DNA from: Macrostomum lignano | Taxonomy: Eukaryota | Direction: 5' to 3' | Length of the DNA: 64,000 nt | Assembly: GCA_002269645.1 (NCBI GenBank) | Contig: NIVC01001860.1 | Location: forward strand, 62,001 to 126,000 | Program-made: the position numbers and the translations under genes | Shown: positions 7,673 through 62,488 of the stretch, piece after piece | How the letters are laid out: each line of letters starts with the position of its first letter | Numbering within the stretch: the stretch's first letter is position 1 | Notes under the pieces: generated by a model | Told to the model about the DNA's origin: nothing | Seen by the model: the letters and a program-made list of their open reading frames with translations, nothing else | The model's database searches: none

Positions 7673-7747
7673 CTGAAATTGCGAAACGTTATTAAGAACT
7701 ACCAGTGTATGCGCATGTATTCTAGTGACCAGCTGTTGCTTGTGATC

Positions 7748-11682: not shown

Positions 11683-12558
<876 letters not shown>

Positions 12559-21923: not shown

Positions 21924-22230
21924 CTGAAAAAATAAAACATTAAAATTATACGAAAACACATTCAGTAGTTGCTTAAGGACTTCTGCTTCTGGGCTTTTGA
22001 GACAGTGTGCTTTCTTGCCTGTTCATAATTTTCATGTTAGGATAAAACACAACAGACATGGATACTGCGCTACCTGTAGCTGGAATATTGCAGGAGATCG
22101 GAGTGACTTAGGGAGGCGAGGAACAGTCTGAGGAGAGGAAGGGGAGCGAAGCAGCCAGCACGGTTAGAGTCGGGGAAGGGCTAACTGTCAGGGACTGAGA
22201 TATTTTGATGGAGAAATGTTGTAGCTCCTG

Positions 22231-32879: not shown

Positions 32880-34053
32880 AGCATTCATATTGTAGTCGTA
32901 AATGTATATAGACGTATTACATATAGATGTAGTACATTGTAGCCGTTTTACCCCCCATACCCCGATGGAGAGTGGTGCGGACGTCGTGTACAAGTGCATG
33001 GTACGCTACGGCCAGCGCAGCCGCAATCCAAGCAACAGCCGCCATCGGAAAAGTTTTTCGCATCTTAAATAATGTATGGCAATGTTCAGTATCAATCTTC
33101 TGCAGAGGCTATGCGTCTGACCTATAAGATCCTACACCTAAAGCTGCCTGTGATTGACCTGTCATGCGCCCAGCTAATTTGTATGTAATATATGAGTAAA
33201 CATGTAGATGATGTTGCAGGAAAAATTAGCTTAGCTTCAGATTGTACATGTACATTTCTGCAGAAATTATCTACATTTGCAAAATTGCAGAACATTATTA
33301 CGCGTATATTTAAATGTGATTTGTATGGCTACTCTGTATGCATGCTATAATATTGAATAATATATTAGCTGTAGGCTTGTAATTTAATTAATGAAAATAT
33401 ATTGAACAAACTCCTTAATCGTAAAATACTTGGCTTGACTCATTTTTTGTACTCATATTTATACTCATCAATACTCATATTCATATTCTATTATAATTCC
33501 CTTATTTAAATACTTTAAATTTGCCATTTCGTTGTTAGTCGTCACTTTCGTCCAAAAATACCGTAAAAAATTTTGGCGCGCTTTCAAATACTTAATTATA
33601 TTTTACAATTAACATCGAATCGTCTTTATAAACTTCTATTTCGAAAATTTTTCCAAATACATTGCCGTATAATATATTGGCCAAACAGGCTAACTGCCTG
33701 AGCCAAATTCCTACTACTACTACTACTACTTGGCGTAGCGTAGTAAGTAGCGTAGTATGCTTGCGAACTCGAATTATATATGCTGACGATATTCTATATA
33801 AACGTTGGAGTTAAACGCGCCAATCCTTCTATGGCAGAGGCCACCGATTTTGGAAATTTCTAATCTGAGTTAGCCCAGCTGCTTTGACATCCAAGCGTGC
33901 GTTCCACGCATTAAGGACTTTCAGGTTAAAGCTCACTTAGCCTGCTATACATTTAATACAATTTGGCTGAGATTGCATGAACTGAACTTTAGCTATTGAG
34001 AAATAACACTAACTGCACTACGTGTCGGCCAACTTGGATTTTTAACAGTAAGA

Positions 34054-34165
34054 ATGACAGTCGTTACAGTCAACTTCTGTCGCTGCATGCTAGCTGTGTG
34101 GCTGTTCTCATCAATATTCTGCTTTAGTGGCTGCGTTGGTTGCAACTTCATCACCAGGCAAATCA
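34054..34165 (+). CDS. Secreted WSC-domain protein, exon 1 (signal peptide)
   Basis: MTVVTVNFCRCMLAVWLFSSIFCFSGCVG is a hydrophobic leader; donor A|GTGAGT, phase 1. Confidence 0.75.
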
Positions 34166-34209
34166 GTGAGTTTTTTCATTATTCTTGCGCAAGAAATATT
34201 TGGTTAGTT

Positions 34210-34990
<781 letters not shown>

Positions 34991-35465: not shown

Positions 35466-35704
35466 AACAGATGCTGATAATATCTACCAGCTATTACAAT
35501 GTATTAAGTTTTTAAGCCTCTCGCAGGCCGTGCAGTCTACTGCCTGTGATAACTTATTAGTTGATATGTGCATTTGCAAATACACTATGCATGCCTCAGC
35601 TAGGGCTTACTTTAAAAGTCCACTAGGACTTATAGCTATATTAGTATTTCGACTTGGGCCTTCTGCTTACTTTTTTGCGACTCAATCGGGCATTTTTAGC
35701 GGCT

Positions 35705-36848
35705 TCTTCCTGTGGCGGTTGCGAGTATTTTAGTTCCAACTCTTCCTGTGACGGTTGCGAGTATTTTAGTTCCATCTCTTCCTGTGACAGTGCTACTGCA
35801 GTTCCAACTCTTCCTGTGACGGTTGCGAGTATTTTAGTTCCAACTCTTCCTGTTACGGTTGCGAGTATTTTAGTTCCAACTCTTCCTGTGACGGTTGCGA
35901 GTATTTTAGTTCCAACTCTTCCTGTGACGGTTGCGAGTATTTAGTTCCAACTCTTCCTGTGACGGTTGCGAGTATTTTAGTTCCAACTCTTCCTGTGACG
36001 GTTGCGAGTATTTTAGTTCCAACTCTTCCTGTTACGGTTGCGAGTATTTTAGTTCCAACTCTTCCTGTGACGGTTGCGAGTATTTTAGTTCCAACTCTTC
36101 CTGTGACGGTTGCGAGTATTTTAGTTCCATCTCTTCCTGTGACGGTTGCGAGTATTGTAGTTCCAACTCTTCCTGCGACGGTTGCGAGAATTGTAGTTCC
36201 AACTCTACCTGTGACGGTTGCGAGAATTGTAGTTCCAACTCTTCCTGTGACGGTTGCGAGTATTTTAGTTCCAACTCTTCCTGTGACGGTTGCGAGAATT
36301 GTAGTTCCAACTCTTCCTGTGACGGTTGCGAGTATTTTAGTTCCAACTCTTCCTGTGACGGTTGCGAGTATTGTAGTTCCAACTCTTCCTGTGACGGTTG
36401 CGAGTATTTTAGTCCCATCTCTTCCTGTGACGGTTGCGAGTATTGTATAGTTCCAACTCTTCCTGTGACGGTTGCGAGTATTTTAGTCCCAACTCTTCCT
36501 GTGACGGTTGCGAGTATTTTAGTCCCAACTCTTCCTGTGACGGTTGCGAGTATTTTAGTTCCAACTCTTCCTGTGACGGTTGCGAGTATTTTAGTTCCAT
36601 CTCTTCATGTGACAGTGCTACTGCAGTTCCAACTCTTCCTGTGACAGTGCTACTGCAGTTCCAACTCTTCCTGTGACGGTTGCGAGTATTTTAGTCCCAA
36701 CTCTTCCTGTGACGGTTGCGAGTATTTTAGTTCCATCTCTTCATGTGACAGTGCTACTGCAGTTCCAACTCTTCCTGTGACAGTGCTACTGCACTTTCAA
36801 CTCTTCCTCTGAAAGCTATTGTAGTTCTAACTCCTCTTGTGACGGTTA
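35705..36848. repeat. 36-bp minisatellite (GTTCCAACTCTTCCTGTGACGGTTGCGAGTATTTTA)n
   Basis: Read directly; abuts the broken end of the LINE fragment. Confidence 0.96.
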
Positions 36849-38712: not shown

Positions 38713-39600
38713 GGCAAGTCCGTCGATCCTATTATTCGTAGCCTGTTTAATGTAGCAGCGTCCTTCACTCGTACATAGTCATACGAATACAATTTAAATT
38801 TATATAACATGGTTTATGACTAGGCTAGGCCTATGGCCATATACTATAGCCTATAGGCTACCAGTCCAGCCTGAGTTTTTTCTGTGGCGCTAAGAATATG
38901 CGAAATCGCACCCAAGTGCAAGTCAAGACCAAGGCACATAGCCGTAGGCATAGTCATTATAGCTTATATAATAATAATATAACATAATGGCAATGCCAAT
39001 GGCAATGCAATAGCAAATTATATAGCTAGCATACATACAAAGTTTGCCAATGTCACTAGGGGCCTATTTATTTATGTAATACTTAAAATAGAGAAATTAG
39101 TTAACTCAAGTCAATTATAGGCCCTAGCTACTAAAATTAAGTAGCTTACTTGATAATAACTTGTATTGTAAACTACATAATAATAATATAGCCTAAATAT
39201 AGCCTATATAATAATATAGCCTATATATGCAGGCCTATACACTAATGGCTAGATCTAGGCCTATCTTATTGCTATTATATTCCATGAAAAGAAAGAATAA
39301 AAATGCCATTCAAAATAGGCCTAGTCTATGTATTAATAGCCCAGGCCTATTCCAAATGCTTTGGCTTTATTTATTATATATTAAGGGCCTAAGCCTATTT
39401 ATTAAGACTGTTTATTGACTAGATTCTTATAATAAATTTATATTAGGCCTATAGTTTATTTACAACCATAGATAAGTAGCATAGCAATAATATAGGCCTA
39501 GGTCTAATCTCTAGAAAGTCAAATATTTATTATAAGGCCTATTATAAGTATGTAATAAAAATGAATAAACATATTTAAAATATATATAACTACTCGCAGT

Positions 39601-40367
39601 TGTGACAGGCCTTTTGGCTCTGTCTTTCTAAACTTCTAACTATTAGTGTTTATTAAATATCCTACGAGCTGCCACCAAAGTTGTTACAGGCCTTTCACCT
39701 CTTACTTTATCAATTTTAATCCCACCGATTTGCCAACTACAGTTATCCTGATTATACTTGCTTTTACTCCCTAACTATTTCTTAGAATTTCATTTAAATA
39801 TTTCTGGGTAGCGTTCTTAGTAGCGTTTCTGGTAGCGTTCTTAGTAGCGTTTCTGGTAGCTTATGGCTTGCTTTCTGGTAGCGTTCTAGTAGCTTATGGC
39901 CTGAGCGGTCTAGTACTGGTATATGTATTAGTGTATAGTCCTAATCGGGCGTTCACCGAGACTAGAGGGTCACGGCGCCTCTCTTGGTATATCTCCAAGA
40001 ATTAGTCCCAATTCCCTTCTCTTAGCAAATTTCTTAGAATCGTTTCACAGGTTTTGCAAATAAATAAGTCGCTATTTAGCTCAAAGACTTTGAAATGGTT
40101 TAGATTGAACTGCTTATTCTGTTCGCAATTATTTGCTCACGAGTAAAAGACAGTTAGAGTATATTTGTCGCGAAACCGCTCCTATATATAGTGATTTTCC
40201 CCACATACGATTAAAACAAAAAATAATTCTCCAATTTATTTCGCACATTAAAACAAACTATTATTTGGCGTTCGCGTAGATTCAGTTTCTAAGAAAGATT
40301 CGAATATACAGTTATTACATTGAAAGAACATTCGAGTATACTATGATAAAGGCATAGCACTAGTACA
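39601..40367 (-). repeat. 3' LTR (767 bp)
   Basis: No difference from 47528-48294 found by eye; TATA-like TATATATA near 40183-40190; AATAAA on the minus strand near 39650. Confidence 0.97.
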
Positions 40368-40368
40368 A

Positions 40369-40380
40369 CTTTCCTCCTCT
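40369..40380 (-). other. Polypurine tract AGAGGAGGAAAG
   Basis: Immediately upstream of the 3' LTR on the element strand. Confidence 0.85.
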
Positions 40381-40653: not shown

Positions 40654-40920
40654 TCAGATAAACATGCAGGGCTCCGGGAGGTCGCGATAGTAGGGCCAGC
40701 CGACTTGAGCGAAAAACCATCGGTACTCTTCGTCGAGGACCGTCAGCGCTGGCGGCGGGTTGGCTCTTATAGCTCGCTGGAGGCGATAGGCGACGTCCTG
40801 GAGAACAGCGACAGCTTCCTGGTAACTGAATTGATCCCTCAGAAACTTCAGGTGTGTCCAAATTTGCGAGCATTGGGGGTAGCGCTGTCGGCTGTCGGAT
40901 CGGTGGTAGGCCCCCCTACG
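40654..40920 (-). CDS. ATG-less 88-codon ORF in the +1 frame at the end of ORF3
   Basis: RRGAYHRSDSRQRYPQCSQIWTHLKFLRDQFSYQEAVAVLQDVAYRLQRAIRANPPPALTVLDEEYRWFFAQVGWPYYRDLPEPCMFI*; globular-like composition; translated by hand. Confidence 0.4.
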   Translation of the reverse strand, partial: RRGAYHRSDSRQRYPQCSQIWTHLKFLRDQFSYQEAVAVLQDVAYRLQRAIRANPPPALTVLDEEYRWFFAQVGWPYYRDLPEPCMFI

Positions 40921-41539
40921 CTACTTTCAGTGCGTATTGCTCAATGTGGAAGCGTAGCTTTTCCACCTCTGCTCCGCGAGTCTCCACAAGTTCTCGGACG
41001 ATGCGATGAAAATCTCTCTGCGAATTCGATTGCTGCTGGCTCGGCTGTAGTGCTGATGGCTGGCTAGACTGCTGCGCTGATTGCAGGCTCGGCTGCAGCG
41101 CTGACTGCTGCGCTGATTGCAGGCTCGGCTGCGACGCTGGCTGCTGAGCTGGCGGTGTCGCAGCTGTCGATTTCTTCTGCCGTGGTGCCGGGGTCTTTCT
41201 CGATGATGGGGCAGCTGGCGGTGACACCAATTGCTGCGTTCGGCTTGATGTCGACGATCCTGGCGTGGCCTTGACAACATAGGAGCGCACGGGCGCAGCT
41301 GCCTGTGCTGCCACCAGGGCGGCGCGCTTCTGTTCGGGGCCTTCGACCCTCATTTGGCGGCAAGGCGATGAAGCTGGCGATGATGTTCTTGGCCGTTTGC
41401 TGGATACACCAGGCGCCTTTGGACGTGTTGCACATCGAAGCGGTGCCTCATTTTCGTCGGTGTTGGGCGCTGGCTGAGGCTCCATATCGTCTGACAGGTC
41501 ACCGATCAACTCTTGCAGAATGTCGACTGAGTTATCCAT
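40916..41539 (-). CDS. Accessory ORF3 of the gypsy element (207 aa, S/P/Q/A-rich, not env)
   Basis: Same sense as pol, between pol and the PPT. Acidic N-terminal helix, basic KRPR/RQKK patches, QPS repeats, C-terminal helix; no signal peptide or TM segment. Confidence 0.7.
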   Translation of the reverse strand: MDNSVDILQELIGDLSDDMEPQPAPNTDENEAPLRCATRPKAPGVSSKRPRTSSPASSPCRQMRVEGPEQKRAALVAAQAAAPVRSYVVKATPGSSTSSRTQQLVSPPAAPSSRKTPAPRQKKSTAATPPAQQPASQPSLQSAQQSALQPSLQSAQQSSQPSALQPSQQQSNSQRDFHRIVRELVETRGAEVEKLRFHIEQYALKVA

Positions 41540-41620
41540 ATGGTTCTCTTCGAATGACTCTTAGAATAGAAAGGAAGCTAGCAGTGAGCTATGGGATCTG
41601 TGGGGCCTGCAGGGTGCTCG

Positions 41621-41690
41621 TATTTATAGGCTGGCGGGCCGAAAAACTGGACCTCTTCGAAGCACTCCCCTCGCGCGTGGGGCGGGGCAT
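41621..41690 (-). promoter_or_regulatory. Internal Pol II promoter for ORF3 (GC box + TATA box)
   Basis: TATAAATA at 41628-41621 and a GC box CCCCGCCCC near 41679-41687, about 80-150 nt upstream of the ORF3 ATG. Confidence 0.6.
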
Positions 41691-41937
41691 GCCAGATTTG
41701 ACAGATTTGACAACTAAATTTTTATGGATTTTCTATTTCTTTTTATAACTTTTTTATTTTTTGATAGATTTTCTTGAGTAAAGTATCAAATTAAAGATCG
41801 CATTTTGTAGATTAATATGGTATTTACAGATTCGCTCTATGTACAGCATGTCAAATTTTATAAGCAGATAAGTAATTCTAATACGGAATTTTAACTATTT
41901 AACACTGTTTCTTATGGGAAATTGCTTACGTCATGAT

Positions 41938-44900
41938 TTAAGGTGCTAAATATCTCGCGTAGCGCCTTCGGGGCACAAATCCTGTCGCGCCTTCTCTTTC
42001 TCTCCTTCGCTGAGTCATCCTAAAGTTATACCTATTCTCTGGCTGAACTCGTTCCTCCTCTAACTCTAATGCTCCTTCTTCTTCTTCTGATGGCTCATCT
42101 GAGTCAGTCGCTCTCTCTGTATTCTCACTGTTTAATTCTTCATTTCCTTCGTTTTCACTCTGCGAATTCGGATCTGCGAATACTCTCCATTGAATTCTGT
42201 TTTCTTCGTCTGAGCTTTCCTCTAAAATTTGAACTTCTGGAATTCTAACTTCTTTTTGTCTATGGCAAATTCTTTTCTTCGGCTTCGGCTGTTCTTTCTT
42301 CTTAGTTGGCACTGGTGCTGGTTTTAAATTATTATTAATTTCCTCTGGTAAATCAATTTCGGATTTCGGCACTGGAGTCAGATTATTTCTATGTACTAAT
42401 AGTTTTTCTCCGCTCCTTTCGCCATTGATTTCTCTTTGCACACGGAACACTGTGTCTGATATCTTCGCAAGTACTCGATAGGCTGCTCTTTTCTTTCGAT
42501 GAAATTTGTGGCTCTCCTCTTGGTGAAGTTGAGGATTGTTGATGAGAGCGAGACAGCCAACTGGCACATTTTTAGGCTGACGATTCTCAACTTCGTCCTC
42601 TTGCCTTTTCTCTCGCACCTTTTCGAGTTGTCTTCGCACAATTGCTTTTGTCTCCTCGATTCTCTTGGCATGATCCAGCACATAACTAGGATAGTCTCGG
42701 TATAGTCTTGGCCTTTTCACAATGCTATCTATTGGCAAATCTGCTTCTCTCCCGAATAGTAAGTAGTGTGGTGTGAACCCAGTAGTTTGATTAACACTGG
42801 TTCGCACAGCTACCAAAGCGGCGGGTATGAGCAGATCCCAATCTGAATGATCCTTTTCAATCAAACAGGTTACAATCGATTTAATTTGCTTGTTAAATCT
42901 TTCGACAAGCCCGTTACTCTGAGCATGGTAAGGCGTAGTGCAAGTATGCTTAATGCCGTATAGGGTACAGAATGCCTGAAATTGGTGACTTACAAAAGTC
43001 TTGCCATTATCAGTGTGTATCCATTGACACTGGCCATACTCGCTGAAAATTCTCTCTTGTATCGTTTTGATAACAGTCGCGGATTTCTGATTCCGAACCG
43101 GAAAAGCGAATGGGAACTTTGTTGTACTATCTACGACAGTAAGTACATATCGGTGTCCTCTTCTGCTTTCCTTTGATATTGGACCGATCAAATCTATGTG
43201 CAGCCGATGAAATGGCTCGCATATCGGAAAGGTCTGCACCGGTGCTCGTACTTTATTTCCGTTTTTACTTTCCAGACACGGGATGCATTCTGCGATGTAC
43301 TTTTCAACTGCAGTCACTAACCCCGGCCTCCAGAATCGGTCTCGGACTCGCTGTAGCGTCTTGTCCCGACCTAGGTGGCCTGCTAGCGGACTGTCGTGCA
43401 GCTCTTTGAATACATCTTTCTCAATCTTCTCTGGCAATACTACTTTTCGTTTACCGTCTTCACTGACTGTCAGCATTTCATCTTCGATTTTCATCTGCTC
43501 GTAGAACTTAACCATCTTCTTCAATTCTCCGGATGCATTTTCTGGTAACTTCGGCTCACGCACTTTCTTCTGCTTCCAGTCCATCAAGGTTCTTATAGAA
43601 GGATCAGCATGCTGCGCTGAAGTCAGCTGCTCTTTCTTCAATGGAACCGAGAGGTAATCTGTCAGAAGCTTTCTGCACACTGTCTCTTCCTCTTCGAAAT
43701 AGTCTCTTGCATCTTCATAGATGTCATCATCATCTTCGAACTGATCACTGGCATCTTCGTATTCATCATCTGCGAATTCGTCTTCGGAATCTGATTCATA
43801 CTCTTCTGTGAAGTCGGTCTGGCAACTCTGATCTTTCACGCTGTTAGTCACGACTTGTTTCACAGCGCTGGTTTCTATTGTCATCTTAGGAATTTCGGCC
43901 TCATTCTCTTTGATCTTAGCATCTTTCTGTTCAACTGGTGGTTCCGAGGGTCGCCGTGACAATCCATCTGCGTTGGAATGTTTGGCTCCACTGCGGTGCT
44001 CAATATCGTATTGAAACTCACTCAGTCTTTCAATCCATCTTCCGAGAATTCCTTGGGCTTCGGTCTGGCGCAGTAACCATAGAATTGCCTTGTGGTCTGT
44101 GCGGGCCAGAAACCTTTTGCCAATTAGGTAAAATCGGAAGTGTTTCATGCCATCTACTAGCGCTAATAGCTCTTTTCTGGTAATCGGATATCTTTTCTCA
44201 GACTCTTTCATTGCTCTGCTGAAGTAAGCAATGGGTCTTTCAACCCCGTCCGATTGTATTTGACCCAGGCAAGCACCAATTCGGTCTTCGCTTGCGTCGG
44301 TGTCTAATACCATTCGAACATTCTCGTTCTCTGAGAATTCTGGGTACGCGAGTACTTCGGTCGATGTCATTCTCTGCTTCAACTGCTGGAAAGCCTCGTC
44401 ATGTTTCTTGGTCCACTTTTCCCTAAAGTTTTGAATACCTTTCTTAGTTAATTGAAATAGCGGATGCGCTGCCTCTGCGTAATTCTTTACAAATCTGCAG
44501 TAGTAGTTACACAACCCCAAGAAGCTTCGCAGTTCTTTGACCTCTTTCGGCGTAGGCCATGACTGTATCGCTTCGATCTTAGCTGGGTCTGTTCTAATCC
44601 CTTCTCTTCCTACGATATGCCCTAAGTACTTTAGCTCTTTCTGAAACAAGTTGCACTTTTTTGGTCTTAATTTTAGTCCTGCTGAGATTAGTCTTTGAAA
44701 TACTTCTTGCAGATGACCGAGATGATCTTCGAATTTCTCTGAGTATGTCACAATATCATCTATGTACGACATTGCGAATTTGTGCTGTATTCCCATCAGC
44801 ACCAAATTCATGAGTCTCTGGAATGTACCAGGAGCGTTAGACAAGCCCTGTGCCATGACCTGATATTCGAACTGGCCTCTGGTAAGGGTGGAAAAGGCTG

Positions 44901-46446
44901 TCATAAATTTGTGCTCCTCTTTGATAGGTACCTGCCAGTATCCAGAGTTTAAATCTAGACTACTGAAGTACTTGCTTCCAGATAACTGAGCGAAAGTCTC
45001 TTGTATGTTCGGCAATGGATATGGGTAATAGTTCACTCTCGAGTTCAGGACCCTGAAGTCACTGACGATTCTTATGGATCCATCCTTCTTAGGAACTATC
45101 ACTAGCGGCGTTGAATAAGTACTATAGCACGGTCGGATCAGGTTCTTAGCAAGCATGTCGTCAAGTTGCTCATCTACTTGCTTTTGCAGATGTGGTGGAA
45201 TTCTGCGTGTTGGAATCCTGACCGGTGTGGTATCTTTTAGAGATATTTCATGAGTCACAAGATGGGTGAGACCCATGTCTTGGTTGGTCTGCGAAAATGC
45301 TTCCTTGTTCTTCTTTAGCAAATCGATCACTAGTCCTTTCTGTTCTGATGTTAGCTCTTCTCCTAAATCGATCTCGTTTATCCAGCTGTACTCACTCTCT
45401 TCACTCTTCACTGTCCTAATTGTATCATCTGAACTGGCTTGACCTTTGCTGTTAATAGAGTAGGCCAGGCCTCCTGGCTTCAAGGGTTTGGCCACTCCAA
45501 TCAGCGTAGATCTTGTCAGTCTGATATCGTCATTCTGTCGATTGATTATTTCCACTACTCCTGTTCCATCGTTCATGGTCACTAGAGTAGGAATCATCTC
45601 TAAGGAATTTCTCTTCGTAGTCACTTGGCCTCCAATGGTGTCAATGACCATTGGCGTTCCATAGTTGGCTTCTGATCCTTTAGTCATTCTAATTGGAATT
45701 CGAAGAGCGCTATTCGCTGGTATAGTCACGCTGTTATGGCTGTAGATTCGGCAAACCCGTACGGGTAATTTTGTAAACTGAATTGGGATGCAGGTTCCTT
45801 CTTTTAATACAAGCATTCCTCTGGAAAGGCTGATGCTGTCGCAGAAGTTCATGAAGAACTCCATCCCGAGTATGTCGTCACACTCGTGATTGCACAGCAG
45901 GAACTCTGTCTCAATCTCTATCTCTCCGAATCGTATTTTCGTTCTGACTTCTCCTTCAATTCGCACACTTGATCCGTCAAACGTAGTCACTCTTCGAGTA
46001 GTCAACTCAATTTCATCACTTCTGAACATCTTTTTCCAAGTACTCTTGCTTAGGAAATTATGTCCAGCTCCTGTGTCTAGCAAGAAGTAGACCTTTCGGT
46101 TTCTTAGCATTCCATTGACGACTGCTTCTCGTCCTTTTCTCTCCGTATCTTCTTCGAATTCTCTCTTCGAATGCTCATTCGGAATTACTGTACTTTGTAC
46201 TTTATTATTCGGCCTACTGTGGCTAGCAGACGCATGACTAGGTGCAAGCGGCATATGTACACGAGGTGCAAAATTTTTATTTGGTTTTCTGTGAAATTTA
46301 TTGAATTCGGCATGCGTTCTGCTGTTACTATACTGTCTGGCATTACTTCGATACGCATTATTTACAAATTCAGAGGCCTGAAATTCGCGATAATTGTTGC
46401 TAGAGGGACGTGGCCTCGCAAAGCGGCCCTCGCTACTCAGTTTCCC
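41938..46446 (-). CDS. pol: Pol polyprotein (protease, RT, RNase H, integrase), expressed by -1 frameshift
   Basis: LDTGA, LDLNSGYWQV, YIDD, DTDAS, HHCC zinc motif and D,D35E (HIDLIGP / HTDNG / NGLVERFN). The frame is open from the GGGAAAC slippery site (46446-46440) through the ATG at 46254. Confidence 0.96.
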   Translation of the reverse strand, partial: GKLSSEGRFARPRPSSNNYREFQASEFVNNAYRSNARQYSNSRTHAEFNKFHRKPNKNFAPRVHMPLAPSHASASHSRPNNKVQSTVIPNEHSKREFEEDTERKGREAVVNGMLRNRKVYFLLDTGAGHNFLSKSTWKKMFRSDEIELTTRRVTTFDGSSVRIEGEVRTKIRFGEIEIETEFLLCNHECDDILGMEFFMNFCDSISLSRGMLVLKEGTCIPIQFTKLPVRVCRIYSHNSVTIPANSALRIPIRMTKGSEANYGTPMVIDTIGGQVTTKRNSLEMIPTLVTMNDGTGVVEIINRQNDDIRLTRSTLIGVAKPLKPGGLAYSINSKGQASSDDTIRTVKSEESEYSWINEIDLGEELTSEQKGLVIDLLKKNKEAFSQTNQDMGLTHLVTHEISLKDTTPVRIPTRRIPPHLQKQVDEQLDDMLAKNLIRPCYSTYSTPLVIVPKKDGSIRIVSDFRVLNSRVNYYPYPLPNIQETFAQLSGSKYFSSLDLNSGYWQVPIKEEHKFMTAFSTLTRGQFEYQVMAQGLSNAPGTFQRLMNLVLMGIQHKFAMSYIDDIVTYSEKFEDHLGHLQEVFQRLISAGLKLRPKKCNLFQKELKYLGHIVGREGIRTDPAKIEAIQSWPTPKEVKELRSFLGLCNYYCRFVKNYAEAAHPLFQLTKKGIQNFREKWTKKHDEAFQQLKQRMTSTEVLAYPEFSENENVRMVLDTDASEDRIGACLGQIQSDGVERPIAYFSRAMKESEKRYPITRKELLALVDGMKHFRFYLIGKRFLARTDHKAILWLLRQTEAQGILGRWIERLSEFQYDIEHRSGAKHSNADGLSRRPSEPPVEQKDAKIKENEAEIPKMTIETSAVKQVVTNSVKDQSCQTDFTEEYESDSEDEFADDEYEDASDQFEDDDDIYEDARDYFEEEETVCRKLLTDYLSVPLKKEQLTSAQHADPSIRTLMDWKQKKVREPKLPENASGELKKMVKFYEQMKIEDEMLTVSEDGKRKVVLPEKIEKDVFKELHDSPLAGHLGRDKTLQRVRDRFWRPGLVTAVEKYIAECIPCLESKNGNKVRAPVQTFPICEPFHRLHIDLIGPISKESRRGHRYVLTVVDSTTKFPFAFPVRNQKSATVIKTIQERIFSEYGQCQWIHTDNGKTFVSHQFQAFCTLYGIKHTCTTPYHAQSNGLVERFNKQIKSIVTCLIEKDHSDWDLLIPAALVAVRTSVNQTTGFTPHYLLFGREADLPIDSIVKRPRLYRDYPSYVLDHAKRIEETKAIVRRQLEKVREKRQEDEVENRQPKNVPVGCLALINNPQLHQEESHKFHRKKRAAYRVLAKISDTVFRVQREINGERSGEKLLVHRNNLTPVPKSEIDLPEEINNNLKPAPVPTKKKEQPKPKKRICHRQKEVRIPEVQILEESSDEENRIQWRVFADPNSQSENEGNEELNSENTERATDSDEPSEEEEGALELEEERVQPENRYNFRMTQRRREREGATGFVPRRRYARYLAP

Positions 46447-46599
46447 TGCTGCTTCTGGTAGTCCATCACTCGCTGACCGTTTGGCCTAGCGCTCTGGCAA
46501 TTCCTCGCCATGTGGCCAAGCTTCCCGCAATTGTAGCAGGCTCGAGGCTGCTGTTGTTGCTGTGGCTGCCTGTTGAACTGAGGCTGACCGCGCCATACT

Positions 46600-46632
<33 letters not shown>

Positions 46633-47426
46633 GGTCCAGCGACCTGAGCGTACGTTTGATATTGATTCTGCGGATGATACTGCTGACGGCTAGCTCTCTT
46701 CTCTTCCATCAGCTCCTCAATCGCCTTCTTCTGTTGCTCTAACTCTGCTCTCTGCTTCTTGATGATGTCCTCAAGCTTCTCCTGATCTGCCTTCTGCTCA
46801 CTCTCGCCTTCGCCTTTGGCCATTCTCATGTTGACATTCTTGTGAGACATGTTCCACGCAGCCTCCATCCTTCTTAGCATTCTTCTAGCCTCTTGTAAAT
46901 TGCCTGGCTGCGCAAAGATTAGCTTCTCACGGGTCTCTGACGGAATTCTGATTCCCTTGATGAATTGCTCAACAATTTCTTCTTCCCTTTGCTCAACCGT
47001 CATATTCGGAAATGCACGCGATGCCAGCTCGATCAAACAGTCTGCGAAAGTCTCTACAGGCTCATTTCTGCCTTGCATTCTTCCACGAAACTCCTCTCTG
47101 AATTCTGCGGAACTACCGATTCTTCCGAATCGCTCAATCAGTCGCTCTTTGAACTCTTCGTATTCGAGATCCTCGGGCAGATTTAGGCGCTGTACCGCTG
47201 CGAATGCAGTGGACAGGTCCAGATTAGCTAGCAATTCCTGCTTCCTATGTTCCTCATCTATCCCTTCTACTTCACAGCGCTGATCGAAAGCTGTTAGCCA
47301 AATCCGAGTGTCTTGCGTAGGTGTGAATTTCTGAATCTTAACGTGTCTCATCGGCCGTATCTCTAGTCGGTTTCGCAATTCTTCTGCCAGCATGGCGATG
47401 GCGTCATTAGCCTGATTCTGATTCAT
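46437..47426 (-). CDS. gag: Gag (329 aa) with CCHC zinc knuckle
   Basis: Capsid-like region plus CYNCGKLGHMARNC. Confidence 0.95.
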
Positions 47427-47514: not shown

Positions 47515-47525
47515 CGCTGCCACCA
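47515..47525 (-). other. Primer binding site TGGTGGCAGCG, complementary to the tRNA-Leu 3' end
   Basis: 2 nt after the 5' LTR; metazoan tRNA-Leu(AAG/TAG) ends ..CCACCGCUGCCA-CCA (recalled sequence). Confidence 0.88.
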
Positions 47526-47527
47526 GC

Positions 47528-48294
47528 TGTGACAGGCCTTTTGGCTCTGTCTTTCTAAACTTCTAACTATTAGTGTTTATTAAATATCCTACGAGCTGCC
47601 ACCAAAGTTGTTACAGGCCTTTCACCTCTTACTTTATCAATTTTAATCCCACCGATTTGCCAACTACAGTTATCCTGATTATACTTGCTTTTACTCCCTA
47701 ACTATTTCTTAGAATTTCATTTAAATATTTCTGGGTAGCGTTCTTAGTAGCGTTTCTGGTAGCGTTCTTAGTAGCGTTTCTGGTAGCTTATGGCTTGCTT
47801 TCTGGTAGCGTTCTAGTAGCTTATGGCCTGAGCGGTCTAGTACTGGTATATGTATTAGTGTATAGTCCTAATCGGGCGTTCACCGAGACTAGAGGGTCAC
47901 GGCGCCTCTCTTGGTATATCTCCAAGAATTAGTCCCAATTCCCTTCTCTTAGCAAATTTCTTAGAATCGTTTCACAGGTTTTGCAAATAAATAAGTCGCT
48001 ATTTAGCTCAAAGACTTTGAAATGGTTTAGATTGAACTGCTTATTCTGTTCGCAATTATTTGCTCACGAGTAAAAGACAGTTAGAGTATATTTGTCGCGA
48101 AACCGCTCCTATATATAGTGATTTTCCCCACATACGATTAAAACAAAAAATAATTCTCCAATTTATTTCGCACATTAAAACAAACTATTATTTGGCGTTC
48201 GCGTAGATTCAGTTTCTAAGAAAGATTCGAATATACAGTTATTACATTGAAAGAACATTCGAGTATACTATGATAAAGGCATAGCACTAGTACA
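47528..48294 (-). repeat. 5' LTR (767 bp)
   Basis: Copy of 39601-40367; followed by TSD CAGT. Confidence 0.97.
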
Positions 48295-49319
48295 CAGTTA
48301 ACTTAATAAAGCTAAGAAGATACATAATAATTTCTTAAATAAATTAACTAGGCCTAGATAAAGTCTTAGGCCTATAATATAAAAGTCAAGCTTAAAATCA
48401 TCTATCATTTATTTTTTGTTTTCTTTAAAATATCTATCTATTAAGTATTAGGGCCTAAGCCTAGGCTAGGCCTAAGTTTAAATTTGAACCAAACTTGTCT
48501 AAAGCAAAAATTTTAGCCTGTCTTTAATAATTATTAGGCCTTACAATTCTTAGCCTTAGCTTATAGGCTTCTTAGTTAATATTATAGCTTTTTGTAGCCT
48601 ATTTGCCATATTTAGGCCTATGCATATTGAATTGAATTTATGAATATATTTGCTAATATAATGGAAGCTTTTGTCTATGGTAGCAAAGCTAGTATAGTGG
48701 CATTTAATTTGGTCCAAATGCTTGTGAGCCATTTGGCAAACTCTTGTTTTCTTGCAACTATAATAAGTAAACTCGGATGGTTAGTGCAAGGTAGAAAAAT
48801 AGTATGGCCCTCACAAGAGCCCACAACCAATGAATATATATTTGGGGCATAGTACCCTTCTGATTCATATTGATTTTGATATGGCCGAATATACATAAGT
48901 AAAATATACATGCAACCCCAACTCATAGCAACCATTGGCATATTGCTATAATATAAATGTCTATCAACAAGTTGATTTAGTTGCTTTTCTAGAGCTCTGC
49001 TAATAATAAAAAACCTGATAACCAACTAGAACTATTCTTTAAACTTCTATTAATTTTTTTTCAATGTAATAAAAGGTTCTCTTTCCTTTTCTAGGCAACC
49101 TTTGCTAGCAATGGTTTTAATGCACTGCTAGATACTTTTCTTTTCTTTTATATTTAGCAACATTGCAATGTCTTTTGGGTGATTATCTCTGTTTAGTGCT
49201 TAGATCATAGCCAATGGCATTCATTTGACACTTGATAACCTAGTATATGGTCTATAATTATGGGGTTGCAATCTTGCTTTTTTGTTGCAATTGCTAATAA
49301 AGCTTGATTGATTCGGACC

Positions 49320-53304: not shown

Positions 53305-55330
53305 ACCCGATAATCCAGTGGATAGATACTCAAACCGATAATCCAGTGGATAGATATTCAACCCGATAATCTAGTGGATAGATAAATACTCAACCCGATA
53401 ATCCAGTGGATAGATAGATACTCAACCCGATAATCCAGTGGATAGATAGATACTCAACCCGATAATCCAGTGGATAGATAGATACTCAACCCGATAATCC
53501 AGTGGATAGATATTCAACCCGATAATCCAGTGGATAGATAAATACTCAACCCGATAATCCAGTGGATAGATAGATACTCAACCCGATAATCCAGTGGATA
53601 GATAGATACTCAACCCGATAATCCAGTGGATAGATAGATACTCAACCCGATAATCCAGTGGATAGATATTCAACCCGATAATCCAGTGGATAGATAAATA
53701 CTCAACCCGATAATCCAGTGGATAGATAGATACTCAACTCGATAATCCGGTGGATAGATACTCAACCCGATAATCCTGTGGATAGATACTCAACCCGATA
53801 ATCCAGTGGATAGATAGATACTCAACCTGATAATCCAGTGGATAGATAGATACTCAACCCGATAATCCAGTGGATAGATACTCAACCCGATAATCCAGTG
53901 GATAGATAGATACTCAACCCGATAATCCAGTGGATAGATACTCAACCCGATAATCCATTGGATAGATACTCAACCCGATAATCCGGTGGATAGATACTCA
54001 ACCCGATGATCCGGTGGATAGATACTCAACCCGATGATCCGGTGGATAAATACTCAACCCGATAATCCAGTGGATAAATACTCAACCCGATAATCCAGTG
54101 GATAGATACTCAACCCGATAATCCAGTGGATAAATACTCAACCCGATAATCCAGTGTATAGATACTCAACCCGATAATCCAGTGGATAAATACTCAACCC
54201 GATAATCCAGTGGATAGATACTCAACCCGATAATCCAGTGGATAGATACTCAACCCGATAATCCAGTGGATAAATACTCAACCCGATAATCCAGTGGATA
54301 GATACTCAACCCGATAATCCAGTGGATAGATACTCAACCCGATAATCCAGTGGATAGATACTCAACCCGATAATCCAGTGGATAAATACTCAACCCGATA
54401 ATCCAGTGGATAGATACTCAATCCGATAATCCAGTGGATAGATACTCAACCCGATAATCCAGTGGATAGATACTCAACCCGATAATCCAGTGGATAAATA
54501 CTCAACCCGATAATCCAGTGGATAGATTCTCAACCCGATAATCCGGTGGATAGATACTCAACCCGATAATCCAGTGGATAGATACTCAACCCGATAATCC
54601 AGTGGATAAATACTCAACCCGATAATCCAGTGGATAGATACTCAACCCGATAATCCAGTGGATAGATACTCAACCCGATAATCCAGTGGATAAATACTCA
54701 ACCCGATAATCCAGTGGATAGATACTCAACCCGATAATCCAGTGGATAGATACTCAACCCGATAATCCAGTGGATAAATACTCAACCCGATAATCCAGTG
54801 GATAGATACTCAATCCGATAATCCAGTGGATAGATACTCAACCCGATAATCCAGTGGATAAATACTCAACCCGATAATCCAGTGGATAAATACTCAACCC
54901 GATAATCCGGTGGATAGATACTCAACCCGATAATCCAGTGGATAAATACTCAACCCGATAATCCAGTGGATAAATACTCAACCCGATAATCCAGTGGATA
55001 GATTCTCAACCCGATAATCCGGTAGATAGATACTCAACCCGATAATCCAGTGGATAAATACTCAACCCGATAATCCAGTGGATAGATACTCAACCCGATA
55101 ATCCAGTGGATAGATACTCAACCCGATAATCCAGTGGATAAATACTCAACCCGATAATCCAGTGGATAAATACTCAACCCGATAATCCAGTGGATAGATA
55201 CTCAACCCGATAATCCAGTGGATAGATACTCAACCCGATAATCCAGTGGATAGATACTCAACCCGATAATCCAGTGGATAGATACTCAACCCGATAATCC
55301 AGTGGATAGATACTCAACCCGATAATCCGG
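53305..55330. repeat. 28-bp minisatellite (TACTCAACCCGATAATCCAGTGGATAGA)n in lamin intron 2
   Basis: Read directly; ends about 65 nt before the exon 3 acceptor. Confidence 0.97.
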
Positions 55331-55395
55331 TAGGTACGAGTATGCGCCCGATGAAAAAGCCTACAAAATCTTACCTGCCCTCCTCGCTTTCCCAG

Positions 55396-55751
55396 TCGGA
55401 GCTGCAGGACTCGCTGGCTCAGCTGCGCACATTTCGCGACCAGCTGGAGACTGAGGTGAAGCTGAAAACTGAGCTGGAGAACCGGCTGCAGACAGCAAAA
55501 GAGGAGGCGGCCTTTCGCGATAGCCTGCTCAAAGAGGAGCGCAGTCGATTTCAAGAGCGCAGCGTCGTTATCGAGGAGGTCACCCGGAGTCAGGAGGCCG
55601 AGTTCGAGTCCCGCCTGTGCGAGGAGCTCCGCCGGGCCAGGCTGGAGGCTGACCAGTCCGCTGCCGAGTTCCGGCTCAATCTGGAGGCCACCTTCAAGGC
55701 CAAAATGGACGAGTTGCGATCCAGTTCGGACAAGTATTCGCAAGATGCCAG
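55396..55751 (+). CDS. Lamin exon 3
   Basis: TTTCCCAG acceptor; ELENRLQTAKEE and EFESRL match the lamin rod; donor AG|GTTCGT. Confidence 0.92.
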
Positions 55752-57052: not shown

Positions 57053-57169
57053 GTGTGGAGCTCGGACTCTGGCAAGACCGCCAAACCGCCCTTGGAGTTT
57101 GTCTCTAAGAGCACCGGCTTGGGCCAGGCTAACAGCTACGATGGCACTCTGCTGGACTCTCGGGGTCAG
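57053..57169 (+). CDS. Lamin exon 5 (rest of the LTD)
   Basis: VWSSDSG..GTLLDSRGQ, phase 0-0; donor GTGCGT. Confidence 0.9.
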
Positions 57170-57244
57170 GTGCGTGCCAGACGCCTGCGTCTAAATTGTC
57201 GCGAACCAACTAATATTAGTAAACAGCCTCCTAAAAACTACTCG

Positions 57245-59065
57245 ACCACCTAAAAAATCGCCACTCAACCACCCTAAAGAATGGCCCCTCAACCACCCTA
57301 AAGAATCGCCCCTCAACCACCCTAAAGAATCGCCCCTCAACCACCCTAAAGAATGGCCACTCAACCACCCTAAAGAATGGCCCCTCAACCACCCTAAAGA
57401 ATCGCCCCTCAACCACCCTAAAGAATGGCCCCTCAACCACCCTAAAGAATGGCCCCTCAACCACCCTAAAGAATGGCCCCTCAACCACCCTAAAGAATGG
57501 CCCCTCAACCACCCTAAAGAATCGCCCCTCAACCACCCTAAAGAATCGCCCCTCAACCACCCTAAAGAATTGCCCCTCAACCACCCTAAAGAATCGCCCC
57601 TCAACCACCCTAAAGAATCGCCCCTCAACCACCCTAAAGAATGGCCCCTCAACCACCCTAAAGAATCGCCCCTCAACCACCCTAAAGAATCGCCCCTCAA
57701 CCACCCTAAAGAATGGCCCCTCAACCACCCTAAAGAATCGCCCCTCAACCACCCTAAAGAATCGCCTCTCAACCACCCTAAAGAATCGCCTCTCAACCAC
57801 CCTAAAGAATGGCCCCTCAACCACCCTAAAGAATCGCCCCTCAACCACCCTAAAGAATGGCCCCTCAACCACCCTAAAGAATCGCCCCTCAACCACCCTA
57901 AAGAATCGCCCCTCAACCACCCTAAAGAATGGCCCCTCAACCACCCTAAAGAATCGCCCCTCAACCACCCTAAAGAATCGCCCCTCAACCACCCTAAAGA
58001 ATCGCCCCTCAACCACCCTAAAGAATCGCCCCTCAACCACCCTAAAGAATCGCCTCTCAACCACCCTAAAGAATCGCCCCTTCAACCACCCTAAAGAATC
58101 GCCCCTTCAACCACCCTAAAGAATCGCCCCTTCAACCACCCTAAAGAATCGCCTCTCAACCACCCTAAAGAATCGCCCCTTCAACCACCCTAAAGAATGG
58201 CCCCTCAACCACCCTAAAGAATGGCCCCTCAACCACCCTAAAGAATCGCCCCTCAACCACCCTAAAGAATCGCCCCTCAACCACCCTAAAGAATCGCCCC
58301 TCAACCACCCTAAAGAATGGCCCCTCAACCACCCTAAAGAATCGCCTCTCAACCACCTAAAAAATCGCCCCTCAACCACCCTAAAGAATGGCCCCTCAAC
58401 CACCCTAAAGAATCGCCTCTCAACCACCCTAAAGAATTGCCCCTTCAACCACCCTAAAGAATCGCCCCTCAACCACCCTAAAGAATCGCCCCTCAACCAC
58501 CCTAAAGAATCGCCTCTCAACCACCCTAAAGAATCGCCCCTTCAACCACCCTAAAGAATCGCCCCTTCAACCACCCTAAAGAATCGCCTCTCAACCACCC
58601 TAAAGAATCGCCCCTTCAACCACCCTAAAGAATGGCCCCTCAACCACCCTAAAGAATGGCCCCTCAACCACCCTAAAGAATCGCCCCTCAACCACCCTAA
58701 AGAATCGCCCCTCAACCACCCTAAAGAATCGCCCCTCAACCACCCTAAAGAATCGCCCCTCAACCACCCTAAAGAATCGCCTCTCAACCACCCTAAAGAA
58801 TCGCCCCTTCAACCACTCTAAAGAATCGCCCCTCAACCACCCTAAAGAATCGCCCCTCAACCACCCTAAAGAATCACCCTTCAACCACCCTAAAAAATCG
58901 CCACTCAACCACCCCAAGAATCGCCCCTCAATCACCCTAAAAAATCGCCCTTCAATCACCCTAAGGAATCGCCCTCAACCACACATAAGAATCGCCCTTT
59001 AACCACCCTAAAGAAGCGCCCCTCAACCACACCAAGAATCGCTCCTCAACCACCCCACCCCCTCA
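57245..59065. repeat. 24-bp minisatellite (CCCTCAACCACCCTAAAGAATCGC)n filling lamin intron 5
   Basis: Read directly; degenerates into the acceptor at 59079. Confidence 0.97.
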
Positions 59066-60310: not shown

Positions 60311-60770
60311 GGGGTAGTGGGCCCATCAGAAAATCTCATTTCTCCGCCCATTTTTATCAGGCCAATTATTTCTTTGTGTCCAATTAAAAAAATTTACATT
60401 AAATTGTCCGATAACGTATTGTACTGATCAGCTCCCTACGCTTAGTTGCCGTGTGCCAGTGTGATTTATAATCATTAATACAATCGTACAGAATTATTTC
60501 CTACTACTAGCTACTGCTGATAAGTAGTATACAATTTGTATTTCAGCTATTTTTTGAAAAAAAGTAAATTTTTTGTTTTTAATTGCCAACTTTGTGTCAC
60601 AAGCATTGATCCGATCGTCTTGCAGCTGCGGTTTTTGTTTCTCTATTCTGTGTCTTCTTTTTTAAGCACTCGATAATAAAATTTTGCTCAAAACCGCCAT
60701 TTTCAAAAGGGACAGTTTCCTGCCAAGTGTTTCCTGCAATCTGTGTTTTGCAAGTGGCACTCATTTCCAG

Positions 60771-62488
60771 ACACACATGGGCTAGCACAGACACACATGG
60801 GCTAGCACAGACACACATGGGCTAGCACAGACACACATGGGCTAGCACAGACACACATGGGCTAGCACAGACACATGGGCTAGCACAGACACACATAGGC
60901 TAGCACAGACACACACAGGCTAGCACAGACACACATGGGCTAGCACAGACACACATGGGCTAGTACAGACACACATAGGCTAGCACAGACACACATAGGC
61001 TAGCACAGACACACATGGGCTAGCACAGACACACATAGGCTAGCACAGACACACATGGGCTAGCACAGACACACATGAGCTAGCACAGACACACATGGGC
61101 TAGCACAGACACACACAGGCTAGCACAGACACACATAAAGGGTAGCACAGACACACATGGGCGAGCACAGACACACATGGGCTAGCACAGACACACATGG
61201 GCGAGCACAGACACACATGGGATAGCACAGACACACATGGGCGAGCACAGACACACATAGGCTAGCACAGACACACATAGGCTAGCACAGACACACATAG
61301 GCTAGCACAGACACACATGAGCTAGCACAGATACACATGGGATAGCACAGACACACATGGGCTAGCACAGACACACATGGGCTAGCACAGACACACATGA
61401 GCTAGCACAGACACACATGGGCTAGCACAGACACACATGGGCTAGCACAGACACACATGGGCTAGCACAGACACACATGGGCGAGCACAGACACATGGGC
61501 TAGCACAGACACACATAGGCTAGCACAGACACACATAGGCTAGCACAGACACACATAGGCTAGCACAGACACACATGGGCTAGCACAGACACACATGAGC
61601 TAGCACAGACACACATGGGCTAGCACAGACACACATGGGCTAGCACAGACACACATGGGCTAGCACAGACACATGGGCTAGCACAGACACACATAGGCTA
61701 GCACAGACACACACAGGCTAGCACAGACACACATGGGCTAGCACAGACACACATGGGCTAGCACAGACACACATGGGCTAGCACAGACACACATGGGCTA
61801 GCACAGTCACACATAAAGGGTAGCACAGACACACATGGGCTAGCACAGACACACATAAAGGGTAGCACAGACACACATGGGCTAGCACAGACACACATGG
61901 GCTAGCACAGACACACATGGGCTAGCACAGACACACATGGGCTAGCACAGACACACATGGGCTAGCACAGACACACATAAAGGGTAGCACAGACACACAT
62001 GGGCTAGCACAGACACACATGGGCTAGCACAGTCACACATAAAGGGTAGCACAGACACACATGGGCTAGCACAGACACACATAAAGGGTACACAGACACA
62101 CATAAAGGGTAACACAGACACACAAAGGGTAGCACAGACACACATAAAGGGTAACACAGACACACATAAAAGCTAGCACAGACACACATAAAGGCTAGCA
62201 CAGACACACGTAAAGGGTAACACAGACACACATAAAGGGTAGCACAAACACACACAGGCTAGCACAGACACACACAGGCTAGCACAGACACACACAGGCT
62301 AGCACAGACACACACAGGCTAGCACAGACACACATAGGCTAGCACAGGCTAGCACAGACACACACAGGCTAACACAGACACACACAGGCTAGCACAGACA
62401 CACACAGGCTAGCACAGACACACATAGGCTAGCACAGGCTAGCACAGACACACACAGGCTAACACAGACACACACAGGCTAGCACAGC
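60771..62488. repeat. 20-bp minisatellite (GGGCTAGCACAGACACACAT)n
   Basis: Read directly; the unit drifts toward the right end. Confidence 0.96.

Follow-up and report, generated by a model that had tools for sequence, protein, structure and literature searches.

Repeated U5-PBS duplication and candidate fossil primer-binding sites in the long terminal repeats of a tRNA-Leu-primed Ty3/Gypsy retrotransposon of Macrostomum lignano

The DNA analyzed here, a stretch of 64,000 nucleotides from contig NIVC01001860.1 (the window), carries on its minus strand an intact Ty3/Gypsy retrotransposon with a primer-binding site (PBS) for tRNA-Leu. Its pol is 100% identical to the Macrostomum lignano protein PAA58172.1, and the host is therefore this free-living flatworm. 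A module made of the last 29 nt of the long terminal repeat (LTR), a spacer of 2-4 nt and the PBS has been duplicated repeatedly. In the reading that we consider the likelier one, the last ~310 bp of the LTR are a pile-up of by-products of reverse transcription with the element's own primer, a tRNA-Leu of the AAG/UAG type. Two such modules lie inside the LTR: one, with TGGTGGCAGC, is decayed but of near full length, and the other, with CGGTGGGATT, is half-decayed. The assignment to Ty3/Gypsy follows from identical TG..CA LTRs, a target-site duplication, a PBS, a polypurine tract, a gag with a CCHC motif and the order of the pol domains, Pfam matches being found in the order zf-CCHC, gag-asp_proteas, RVT_1, RT_RNaseH, Integrase_H2C2 and rve. 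The PBS is complementary to the 3' end, CCA included, of human tRNA-Leu-AAG.

An earlier note on this DNA had listed short boxes in both LTRs as complementary to separate parts of the element's primer tRNA. All of these motifs (GCTGCCACCA, AATCCCACCG, GGTAGCGT and GTAGCTTATGGCCTGAGCGGTCTA; Table 1) were found where it had placed them, and again 7927 bp lower in the other LTR, and the tRNA sequence it had given is that of human tRNA-Leu-AAG-1-1 as printed in PMC10359600. The boxes are complementary to the element's own primer tRNA-Leu and antisense on the element RNA, as claimed, since all matches are tRNA-sense on the + strand of a minus-strand element. The note also rightly held that they do not form one plain tRNA cDNA, the pieces being non-collinear, and that they lie downstream of a TATA box, if the TATA-like motif found upstream of them on the element strand is indeed the promoter. 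Against a chance model of 5000 dinucleotide-preserving shuffles of the LTR, three exact 10-mer blocks are shared by the LTR and tRNA-Leu(AAG), where the shuffles average 0.05 (P about 2e-4), and seven 8-mer blocks, where they average 0.87 and none got to 7. The matches are thus far above shuffled LTRs, as the note had expected. In ~260 kb of M. lignano DNA no tRNA gene was found, that of the host tRNA-Leu included. The 3' 19 nt of the M. lignano tRNA-Leu were read from perfect 19-nt PBSs of sibling copies, and its 5' 31 nt were assumed to be conserved, the human sequence being identical over this stretch to two full-length metagenomic tRNA-Leu-like sequences (L031 and L032).

AT-rich repetitive sequence can raise the number of short matches, and a degenerate tRNA gene, pseudogene or short interspersed element (SINE) in the LTR could in principle leave tRNA-like pieces. 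However, the shuffle tests exclude chance, ARAGORN reported no tRNA and Rfam no match at the gathering threshold or even at E<=10; moreover, the matching segments run antisense and are not collinear with the tRNA, and an LTR-terminus motif accompanies every PBS-like one. Either explanation has a negligible probability. An additional exact TGGTGGCAGC occurs at 41307-41316 (-) within the third open reading frame (ORF3) of the element and is conserved in family copies (L001 14700, L003 7338 and L004 14696). It is probably coincidental, lying in GC-rich coding sequence with no LTR-end motif ahead of it.

For comparison with the window, eight more loci encoding cluster relatives of pol were taken from the M. 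lignano assembly. Of these, L004 shares the flanks of the window element and is this locus assembled redundantly. The remaining seven are independent insertions, and their LTRs have 96-99.5% identity to that of the window. The 29-nt module at the LTR end is probably U5, because it starts ~20 nt past the only nearby AATAAA, and the R/U5 border would then lie at its start. A 50-nt probe (U5 of 29 nt, GC and PBS of 19 nt) was aligned to LTR interiors and to shuffles. Unit 2 aligned to probe positions 3-49 with a score of 49, the best score per shuffle averaging 18.9 with a maximum of 33. Its layout of LTR-terminus-like sequence, short spacer and decayed PBS parallels the true LTR end, ...AAAGGCCTGTCACA-GC-TGGTGGCAGCG. 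One unit upstream, the AATCCCACCG box corresponds on the element strand to CGGTGGGATT, the exact distal half of the 19-nt tRNA-templated PBS, and is preceded by TTGGCAAAT, a damaged TGGTGGCAG. Three grounds favour reading unit 1 as a fossil PBS: its box is identical to the distal half of the PBS in the siblings, it stands one unit upstream of unit 2, and PBS-like units occupy the same place in a sibling copy, L001. There the LTR has three tandem units with scores of 41, 34 and 29 (shuffle 99th percentile, 28), each composed of CCTGT(C/T)ACA or CTACCACA, AC(T)T and a PBS-like 18-19-mer. When the units are aligned, every one shows CCTGTnACA, then AC(TT) or GC, then TGGTGGCAGCGGTGGGATT-like sequence. 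Their number and content differ by subfamily, the remainder of the LTR being ~97% identical.

The PBS fossils match the tRNA at 14-16/18 nt, with a longest contiguous match of 10 nt. The boxes corresponding to the 3' end and the T arm are very probably fossil PBSs and require no dedicated function. The multivalent platform for tRNA capture or primer activation proposed in the earlier note is not needed for these decayed PBS copies, and may apply to the segment that matches the 5' end and D arm of the tRNA (hereafter the 5'/D block). Across the family, the 5'/D block is invariant, and both the number and content of the units and the number of array repeats vary.

In L001, a diverged copy, a fresh duplication can be seen. 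Behind its 5' LTR only, the sequence reads GC-TGGTGGCAGCGGTGGGATT-GTTC-AGAAAGACAGAGCCAAAAGGCCTGTCACA-GC-TGGTGGCAGCGATAAGG, that is, 5' LTR-GC-PBS19-GTTC-U5(29 nt)-GC-PBS11, with GTTC as a 4-nt filler. The U5 behind the upstream PBS repeats the terminal 29 nt of the LTR exactly, and the 3' LTR terminates at the first GTCACA. Because the two PBS copies are unlike and the upstream one is a perfect tRNA copy, this was more probably an event of the reverse-transcription stage than a plain DNA duplication. An isolated inverted fragment of ~130 bp, consisting of U5-PBS-like units alone and free of other LTR or leader sequence, is located 1.7 kb past the same element (L001 18198-18325, minus strand).

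Copying from the tRNA is also visible in the active PBS. Among the eight independent insertions, the PBS is either a perfect 19-nt complement of the tRNA or an 11-13-nt variant (Table 1); the perfect 19-mer TGGTGGCAGCGGTGGGATT occupies the active-PBS position in L003, L008 and L009, and is present in L001. The family PBS is partly inherited through the genome and partly re-copied from the primer tRNA, and such polymorphism is the expected signature. By the established mechanism of retroviruses, plus-strand strong-stop DNA takes in a copy of the last 18 nt of the tRNA, as far as m1A58. The tRNA-templated copies in the window's family stop at 19 nt, with no copying past m1A58.

Aberrant or deferred plus-strand transfer may be the source of these duplications. 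Plus-strand strong-stop DNA ending in a tRNA copy would jump non-homologously onto a minus-strand template starting at the U5 start; an acceptor template ending at the R/U5 border would suit a 29-nt module that equals U5. In the next cycle the downstream PBS would prime, the minus-strand strong-stop DNA would include the upstream unit, and both progeny LTRs would receive it. The old PBS would thereby become internal to the LTR and then decay. Only duplications that bring a usable LTR end together with a PBS would propagate, which would explain why each fossil keeps the terminus motif. Older units would lie further upstream and decay independently, the T-arm half surviving in one and the 3'-end half in the next, and the non-collinear order of the boxes would result from these separate accretion events. 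The units are best regarded as a form of the known aberrant strand-transfer products, one that has arisen repeatedly, become fixed in an active family and been taken up by its LTRs. In the window element itself only decayed units remain, and the aberrant-transfer arrangement can be read in L001 and in a metagenomic locus, L016.

This locus (L016, 1036-1430), from an unrelated lineage, contains a perfect [58-nt U5]-[33-nt tRNA-Leu copy]-[58-nt U5] arrangement flanked by TAGAC. It is a probable solo LTR and, to judge from its sequence, is the internalised state of such a unit. It was also considered as a case of the 5'/D block and rejected, being better read as a collinear read-through relic since CCACGC occurs twice in the tRNA. 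Other parallels came from a metagenome scan for mature-tRNA-Leu cDNA extending past A58, which yielded 25 loci, all thus selected for read-through. In most of them ...CA and then 0-4 nt precede an antisense tRNA-Leu segment of 25-58 nt. The tRNA-Leu copy is joined within about 10-100 nt to sequence coding for reverse transcriptase (RT) in L015, in the near-identical L020 and L014, and in L025, and these loci look like internal-deletion derivatives akin to the deferred second-strand-transfer deletions of HIV-1 (human immunodeficiency virus type 1). Two tRNA-Leu-primed metagenomic loci (L036 and L026) have an integrase-like match upstream of the RT match, a Gmr1-like domain order. Scans for CACGCTACC-N(1-30)-TGGTGGCAGCG were uninformative both in prokaryote genomes (45 matches, about 32 being expected by chance) and in viral contigs (2 matches), and on the contig of a distant relative, P0003 (L011), neither an LTR nor a PBS could be recognised.

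A second M. lignano family (L002 and L010), with 50% amino-acid identity in pol and the same PBS as the window element, repeats the 11-mer TGGTGGCAGCG exactly some 200 nt within its LTR, where there is also a candidate decayed unit. In L002, positions 7562-7672 (and the same region of L010) contain four copies of GGAGTCTACC, with a looser GGAGTCTCTC near 7950, upstream of an AT-rich stretch; this arrangement of repeats resembles that of the CGCTACC array in the family of the window element. The 5' LTR of L010 alone differs from its 3' LTR by a 4-nt insertion, AGCT (alignment columns 479-482), which changes CCACGCT-TGTCCA to CCACGCTAGCTTGTCCA, nearer to the antisense of the tRNA 5' end (CCACGCTACC).

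The 5'/D block lies on the same strand as the PBS. In Smith-Waterman comparisons with shuffles, from which the PBS-unit array was excluded, it gave P=0.0007 for the whole tRNA and <1/3000 for the 5' 24 nt, and it is specific to the Leu-AAG type (P is 0.018 for Leu-CAG, 0.23 for CAA and 0.89 for TAA). No other part of the LTR is predicted to bind tRNA-Leu as strongly: the modelled duplex extends over 22 nt with bulges and has -38.9 kcal/mol, compared with -27.8 for the active PBS and -14.4+-5.9 for the LTR background, all calculated for unmodified RNA with the cost of unfolding the tRNA ignored. The block is invariant in all copies of a family that is 96-100% identical, a similarity too high for conservation to inform, and the L001 subfamily retains its full ...GCTACC end. 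Directly after the tRNA 5' terminus stand AGAA(AG), the opening bases of the 29-nt U5. The tandem array repeats this junction, CGCTACC-AGAAA, so that the terminal 7-mer of the block is amplified, and its copy number varies (L001, -13 nt; L006 and L007, -12 nt; L009, -24 nt). Copying of the 5' part of the tRNA to its end, followed by a restart at U5, may have produced CGCTACC joined directly to AGAAAG, and slippage would have amplified this junction into the 12/24-nt array.

Similar blocks occur elsewhere. In the 300 nt upstream of the PBS in unrelated tRNA-Leu-primed elements, sequence antisense to tRNA nt 1-26 reached P<=0.01 in 4/21 loci (L019, L022, L028 and L029), and the sense control did so in 0/21. 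The LTRs of the block-bearing metagenomic loci have no detectable similarity to each other, and the distance between block and PBS is not conserved, ranging from 1 to about 290 nt. A block directly adjacent to the PBS was considered as a general rule and rejected, since it passes just in the L002 family (P=0.0035) and L019 (P=0.016), fails in the others and is weakly significant overall.

These data bear on whether the block is a scar or a functional site. It may be that the 5'/D block, and perhaps the CGCUACC repeats and PBS-like units, form a multipartite primer site kept for pairing with tRNA-Leu beyond its 3' end. The PBS would open the acceptor stem, and the freed 5' strand and D arm would be captured, so that the primer is stabilised or positioned or the genome ends are bridged, as proposed for Ty3, Ty1 and Drosophila Gypsy. 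The predicted energy of the block exceeding that of the PBS, its invariance in the family and better fit to the tRNA than the PBS fossils, the enrichment of antisense blocks in unrelated LTRs and the block directly beside the PBS in the L002 family are all in line with such a site, for which the second 11-nt tRNA-Lys site of Gypsy and the bipartite PBS of Ty3 are precedents (PMC1635307). However, the variable distance to the PBS, the array copy number that differs among active copies, the different decay of the PBS-like units in the two subfamilies, a family identity that makes conservation uninformative and the weak overall significance of the PBS-adjacent class argue against it, and we regard a functional multipartite site as rather unlikely.

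Several observations weigh against an origin of the whole region from reverse-transcription by-products. The idea that a full-length antisense tRNA, now decayed, lies upstream of the 5'/D block was rejected: the Smith-Waterman alignment does extend collinearly, but the extension was not above shuffles (P=0.33), and the block is not preceded by a recognisable rest of the tRNA. Fresh read-through copies elsewhere end at 25-58 nt and never reach the tRNA 5' end, and so provide no precedent for the copying of nt 1-22. The block also fits the tRNA better (~21/22 nt and two indels) than the supposedly younger PBS fossils do, and this fit, together with the recurrence of such blocks in unrelated tRNA-Leu-primed LTRs, hints at selection. 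Among the units, unit 1 (CGGTGGGATT) alone is insignificant with a probe score of 23, and a longer paralogous unit that could be the U5 partner of CGGTGGGATT (LTR 560-650 vs 700-790) is suggestive, with P=0.06 including and 0.19 excluding the PBS part. Unit 2 retains a 10-nt perfect match, nearly the length of the active 11-nt PBS. Finally, in none of the family copies compared was the fresh unit of L001 found in both LTRs, so that the support for internalisation comes from just the decayed units and L016, and L001 could equally derive from a longer-LTR parent primed at its upstream PBS, the same process in the opposite direction.

Two other functions could be attributed to the repeats and the block. 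They may be ordinary enhancer or promoter repeats of U3 whose likeness to the tRNA is now incidental, with transcription starting downstream, near ATATTTAAAT and GTATAAT. LTRs commonly carry tandem repeats upstream of the core promoter, AT-rich TATA-like motifs stand directly after the array, and the layout in L002 is similar, with four GGAGTCTACC repeats and a looser GGAGTCTCTC, an AT-rich stretch and a PBS relic. However, the likeness to tRNA-Leu nt 1-22 is far above chance and strand-specific, which argues for a tRNA-related origin. The enhancer explanation is improbable. A motif check of the window LTR revealed no canonical heat-shock element, and such elements occur in other M. lignano LTRs (PMC12801592).

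Alternatively, 3' CCA tRNA-derived fragments (tRFs) or 5' tRFs of tRNA-Leu may bind the boxes, either in silencing by the host or with the element acting as a sponge. An abundant 18-nt 3' tRF of tRNA-Leu, ATCCCACCGCTGCCACCA, is known, Schorn et al. reportedly found in 2017 that 3' tRFs target the PBSs of LTR retrotransposons, and the 5'/D block has the length of a tRF-5 (about 22 nt). However, the PBS-like fossils keep 10 contiguous nt with mismatches and indels, a poor target of the Argonaute type, and additional target sites would harm the element and would not be selected. A role as target or decoy is thus very improbable. The 5'/D block is truly complementary to the tRNA. That it is a pure scar falls, in our estimate, a little short of an even chance; a retained second contact with the tRNA, perhaps built from a captured scar, is a live rival, possible and clearly less probable; and the enhancer and tRF explanations account for the remainder.

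Table 1. Position of the features of the element, its LTRs and the segments shared with tRNA-Leu (window coordinates)
Feature	Position	Strand	Sequence and remarks
5' LTR	47528..48294	-	767 bp; TGTACT...GTCACA on the element strand; 100% identity to 39601-40367
3' LTR	39601..40367	-	767 bp; identical boxes at 5' LTR coordinates minus 7927
Target-site duplication	39597-39600 and 48295-48298		CAGT, 4 bp; flanks of the element
TATA-like motif (putative promoter)	48110..48119	-	CTATATATAG (TATATATAG); upstream of all boxes on the element strand
5'-end/D-arm block	47816..47839	-	TAGACCGCTC-A-GGCCA-TAA-GCTAC; antisense to tRNA-Leu ~nt 1-22 (5' acceptor strand, D arm)
Box GTAGCTTATGGCCTGAGCGGTCTA	47816-47839	+	+ strand reading of the 5'-end/D-arm block
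Tandem array	47728..47820	-	Period 12/24 nt (TRF); CGCTAC(C/T)-A(A)GAA(A); antisense to tRNA nt 1-7, plus AGAA
Box GGTAGCGT, three times	47734, 47758, 47804		Within the 12/24-nt array
Putative fossil PBS, unit 1	47645..47662	-	TGGCAAATCGGTGGGATT; holds the AATCCCACCG box
Box AATCCCACCG	47645-47654	+	tRNA-sense; within unit 1
Putative fossil U5-PBS unit 2	47586..47635	-	..AAAGGCCTGTAACA-ACTT-TGGTGGCAGCTCGTAGGAT; holds the GCTGCCACCA box; LTR positions 660-709
Box GCTGCCACCA	47595-47604	+	tRNA-sense; within unit 2
AATAAA, putative polyadenylation signal	47576..47581	-	LTR position 714-719
Last 29 nt of the LTR (probable U5)	47528..47556	-	AGAAAGACAGAGCCAAAAGGCCTGTCACA; module duplicated with the PBS
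Spacer between 5' LTR and PBS	47526-47527		GC, 2 nt
Active PBS	47515..47525	-	TGGTGGCAGCG; 11 nt complementary to the tRNA-Leu 3' end CGCUGCCACCA, CCA included
gag open reading frame	46437..47426	-	329 aa; CCHC zinc knuckle; open
pol open reading frame	41938..46254	-	1438 aa; protease, RT, RNase H, integrase in this order; open
Polypurine tract (role suggested by position)	40368..40380	-	AGAGGAGGAAAGT; abuts the upstream side of the 3' LTR
PBS after TGGTGGCAGC, window and L005			GATAAGGATT; 11-nt match (GCGATAAGG)
PBS after TGGTGGCAGC, L007			GGTAAGGATT; match GCGGTAAGG
PBS after TGGTGGCAGC, L003, L008 and L009			GGTGGGATT; perfect 19-nt complement of AAUCCCACCGCUGCCACCA

In the region that separates pol from the 3' LTR, the element carries ORF3 (207 aa, 40916-41539, minus strand), which is GC-rich, encodes a product rich in Q, S and A, and gave no match in a Pfam search. 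An ATAAATA motif and a GC-rich stretch upstream of it form a promoter-like region near 41600-41700, and ORF3 might be an accessory gene, or a captured one, transcribed from a promoter of its own. The flanks of the element (39200-39600 and 48300-48480) are AT-rich with many AGGCCT(A/T) motifs, for instance 'aggcctag' and 'ggcctata', and resemble a dispersed or satellite-like repeat. Outside the element, minisatellite arrays of many kinds fill most of the window, several with strong GC skew and with periods of 8/12, 18, 20, 21, 23, 24, 26, 28, 31 and 36 bp (2400-3500, 7650-8430, 11650-12500, 13350-14700, 16650-17200, 22200-23100, 34050-34600, 35700-36740, 53740-55500, 57100-58900, 60690-61600 and 63490-64000).

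The duplication of the PBS with the LTR end and its later absorption constitute a route, readable in sequence, by which LTRs may change in length and gain complementarity to a tRNA. Aberrant strand-transfer products, mostly known from defective HIV-1 proviruses, can thus be fixed and reused in an active lineage, and the extended contacts between primer and template in Ty1, Ty3, Gypsy and retroviruses could plausibly have arisen from them. We also consider, as a rather doubtful generalisation, that tRNA-Leu-primed Ty3/Gypsy elements across eukaryotes keep an R/U5 contact to the 5' acceptor strand and D arm of the tRNA, so that both strands of the opened stem are captured, and that their LTRs lengthen by U5-PBS units, the stack of fossil PBSs being a record of errors and also raw material. 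Whether capture of the tRNA 5' strand aids priming is a question raised by these data, and M. lignano is amenable to transgenesis and has active LTR elements (PMC12801592). In annotation, tools that define LTR boundaries can be misled by PBS-like motifs within an LTR. In the literature searched, which was limited in range and included a survey of M. lignano LTR elements, no description of such units was found; the survey mentions neither PBSs nor tRNAs.

Several known systems resemble parts of what is found here. Tf1 primes itself through a complement of its PBS at the 5' end of its RNA. The window element likewise has second PBS-related copies in R/U5, but these have the same sense as the PBS, and Tf1-like self-priming was rejected since the element strand of the LTR contains no tRNA-sense match >=9 nt, only a chance 8-mer. 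The pairing of the primer activation signal (PAS) with the anti-PAS in HIV-1, and the U5-TpsiC interaction in Rous sarcoma virus (RSV), involve tested motifs of 7-8 nt at a fixed position. As in these viruses, short U5 sequences upstream of the PBS are complementary to the tRNA, but in the window's family their position and number vary. Drosophila Gypsy has a second 11-nt site for tRNA-Lys,2 and Ty3 a 5'-3' bipartite PBS (PMC1635307). With these sites and boxes 0, 1 and 2.1 of Ty1, the window element shares additional complementarity to primer regions beyond the 3' end (D arm, T arm), in segments situated in or near the LTR of a Ty3/Gypsy element. Unlike them, its complementarity spans the 5' acceptor strand itself, up to 22 nt, and is read from the DNA; one segment is amplified in a polymorphic tandem array, and the T-arm and 3'-end segments are very probably PBS fossils.

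Sequences of tRNA occur at the circle junctions of murine leukaemia virus (MLV) and avian retroviruses. The closest likeness is to the deferred second-strand-transfer products of defective HIV-1 proviruses, which carry tRNA inserts of 7-54 nt (PMC12657518): in both, tRNA-templated sequence stands right after U5, junctions are non-homologous with short fillers, and the metagenomic relatives have tRNA-Leu copies of 25-58 nt, some of them joined straight to pol. Unlike the HIV-1 products, those described here are not dead ends but belong to a young, intact, multi-copy family, in which U5 and PBS are duplicated instead of deleted, the events are repeated and the old PBSs now lie within both LTRs.

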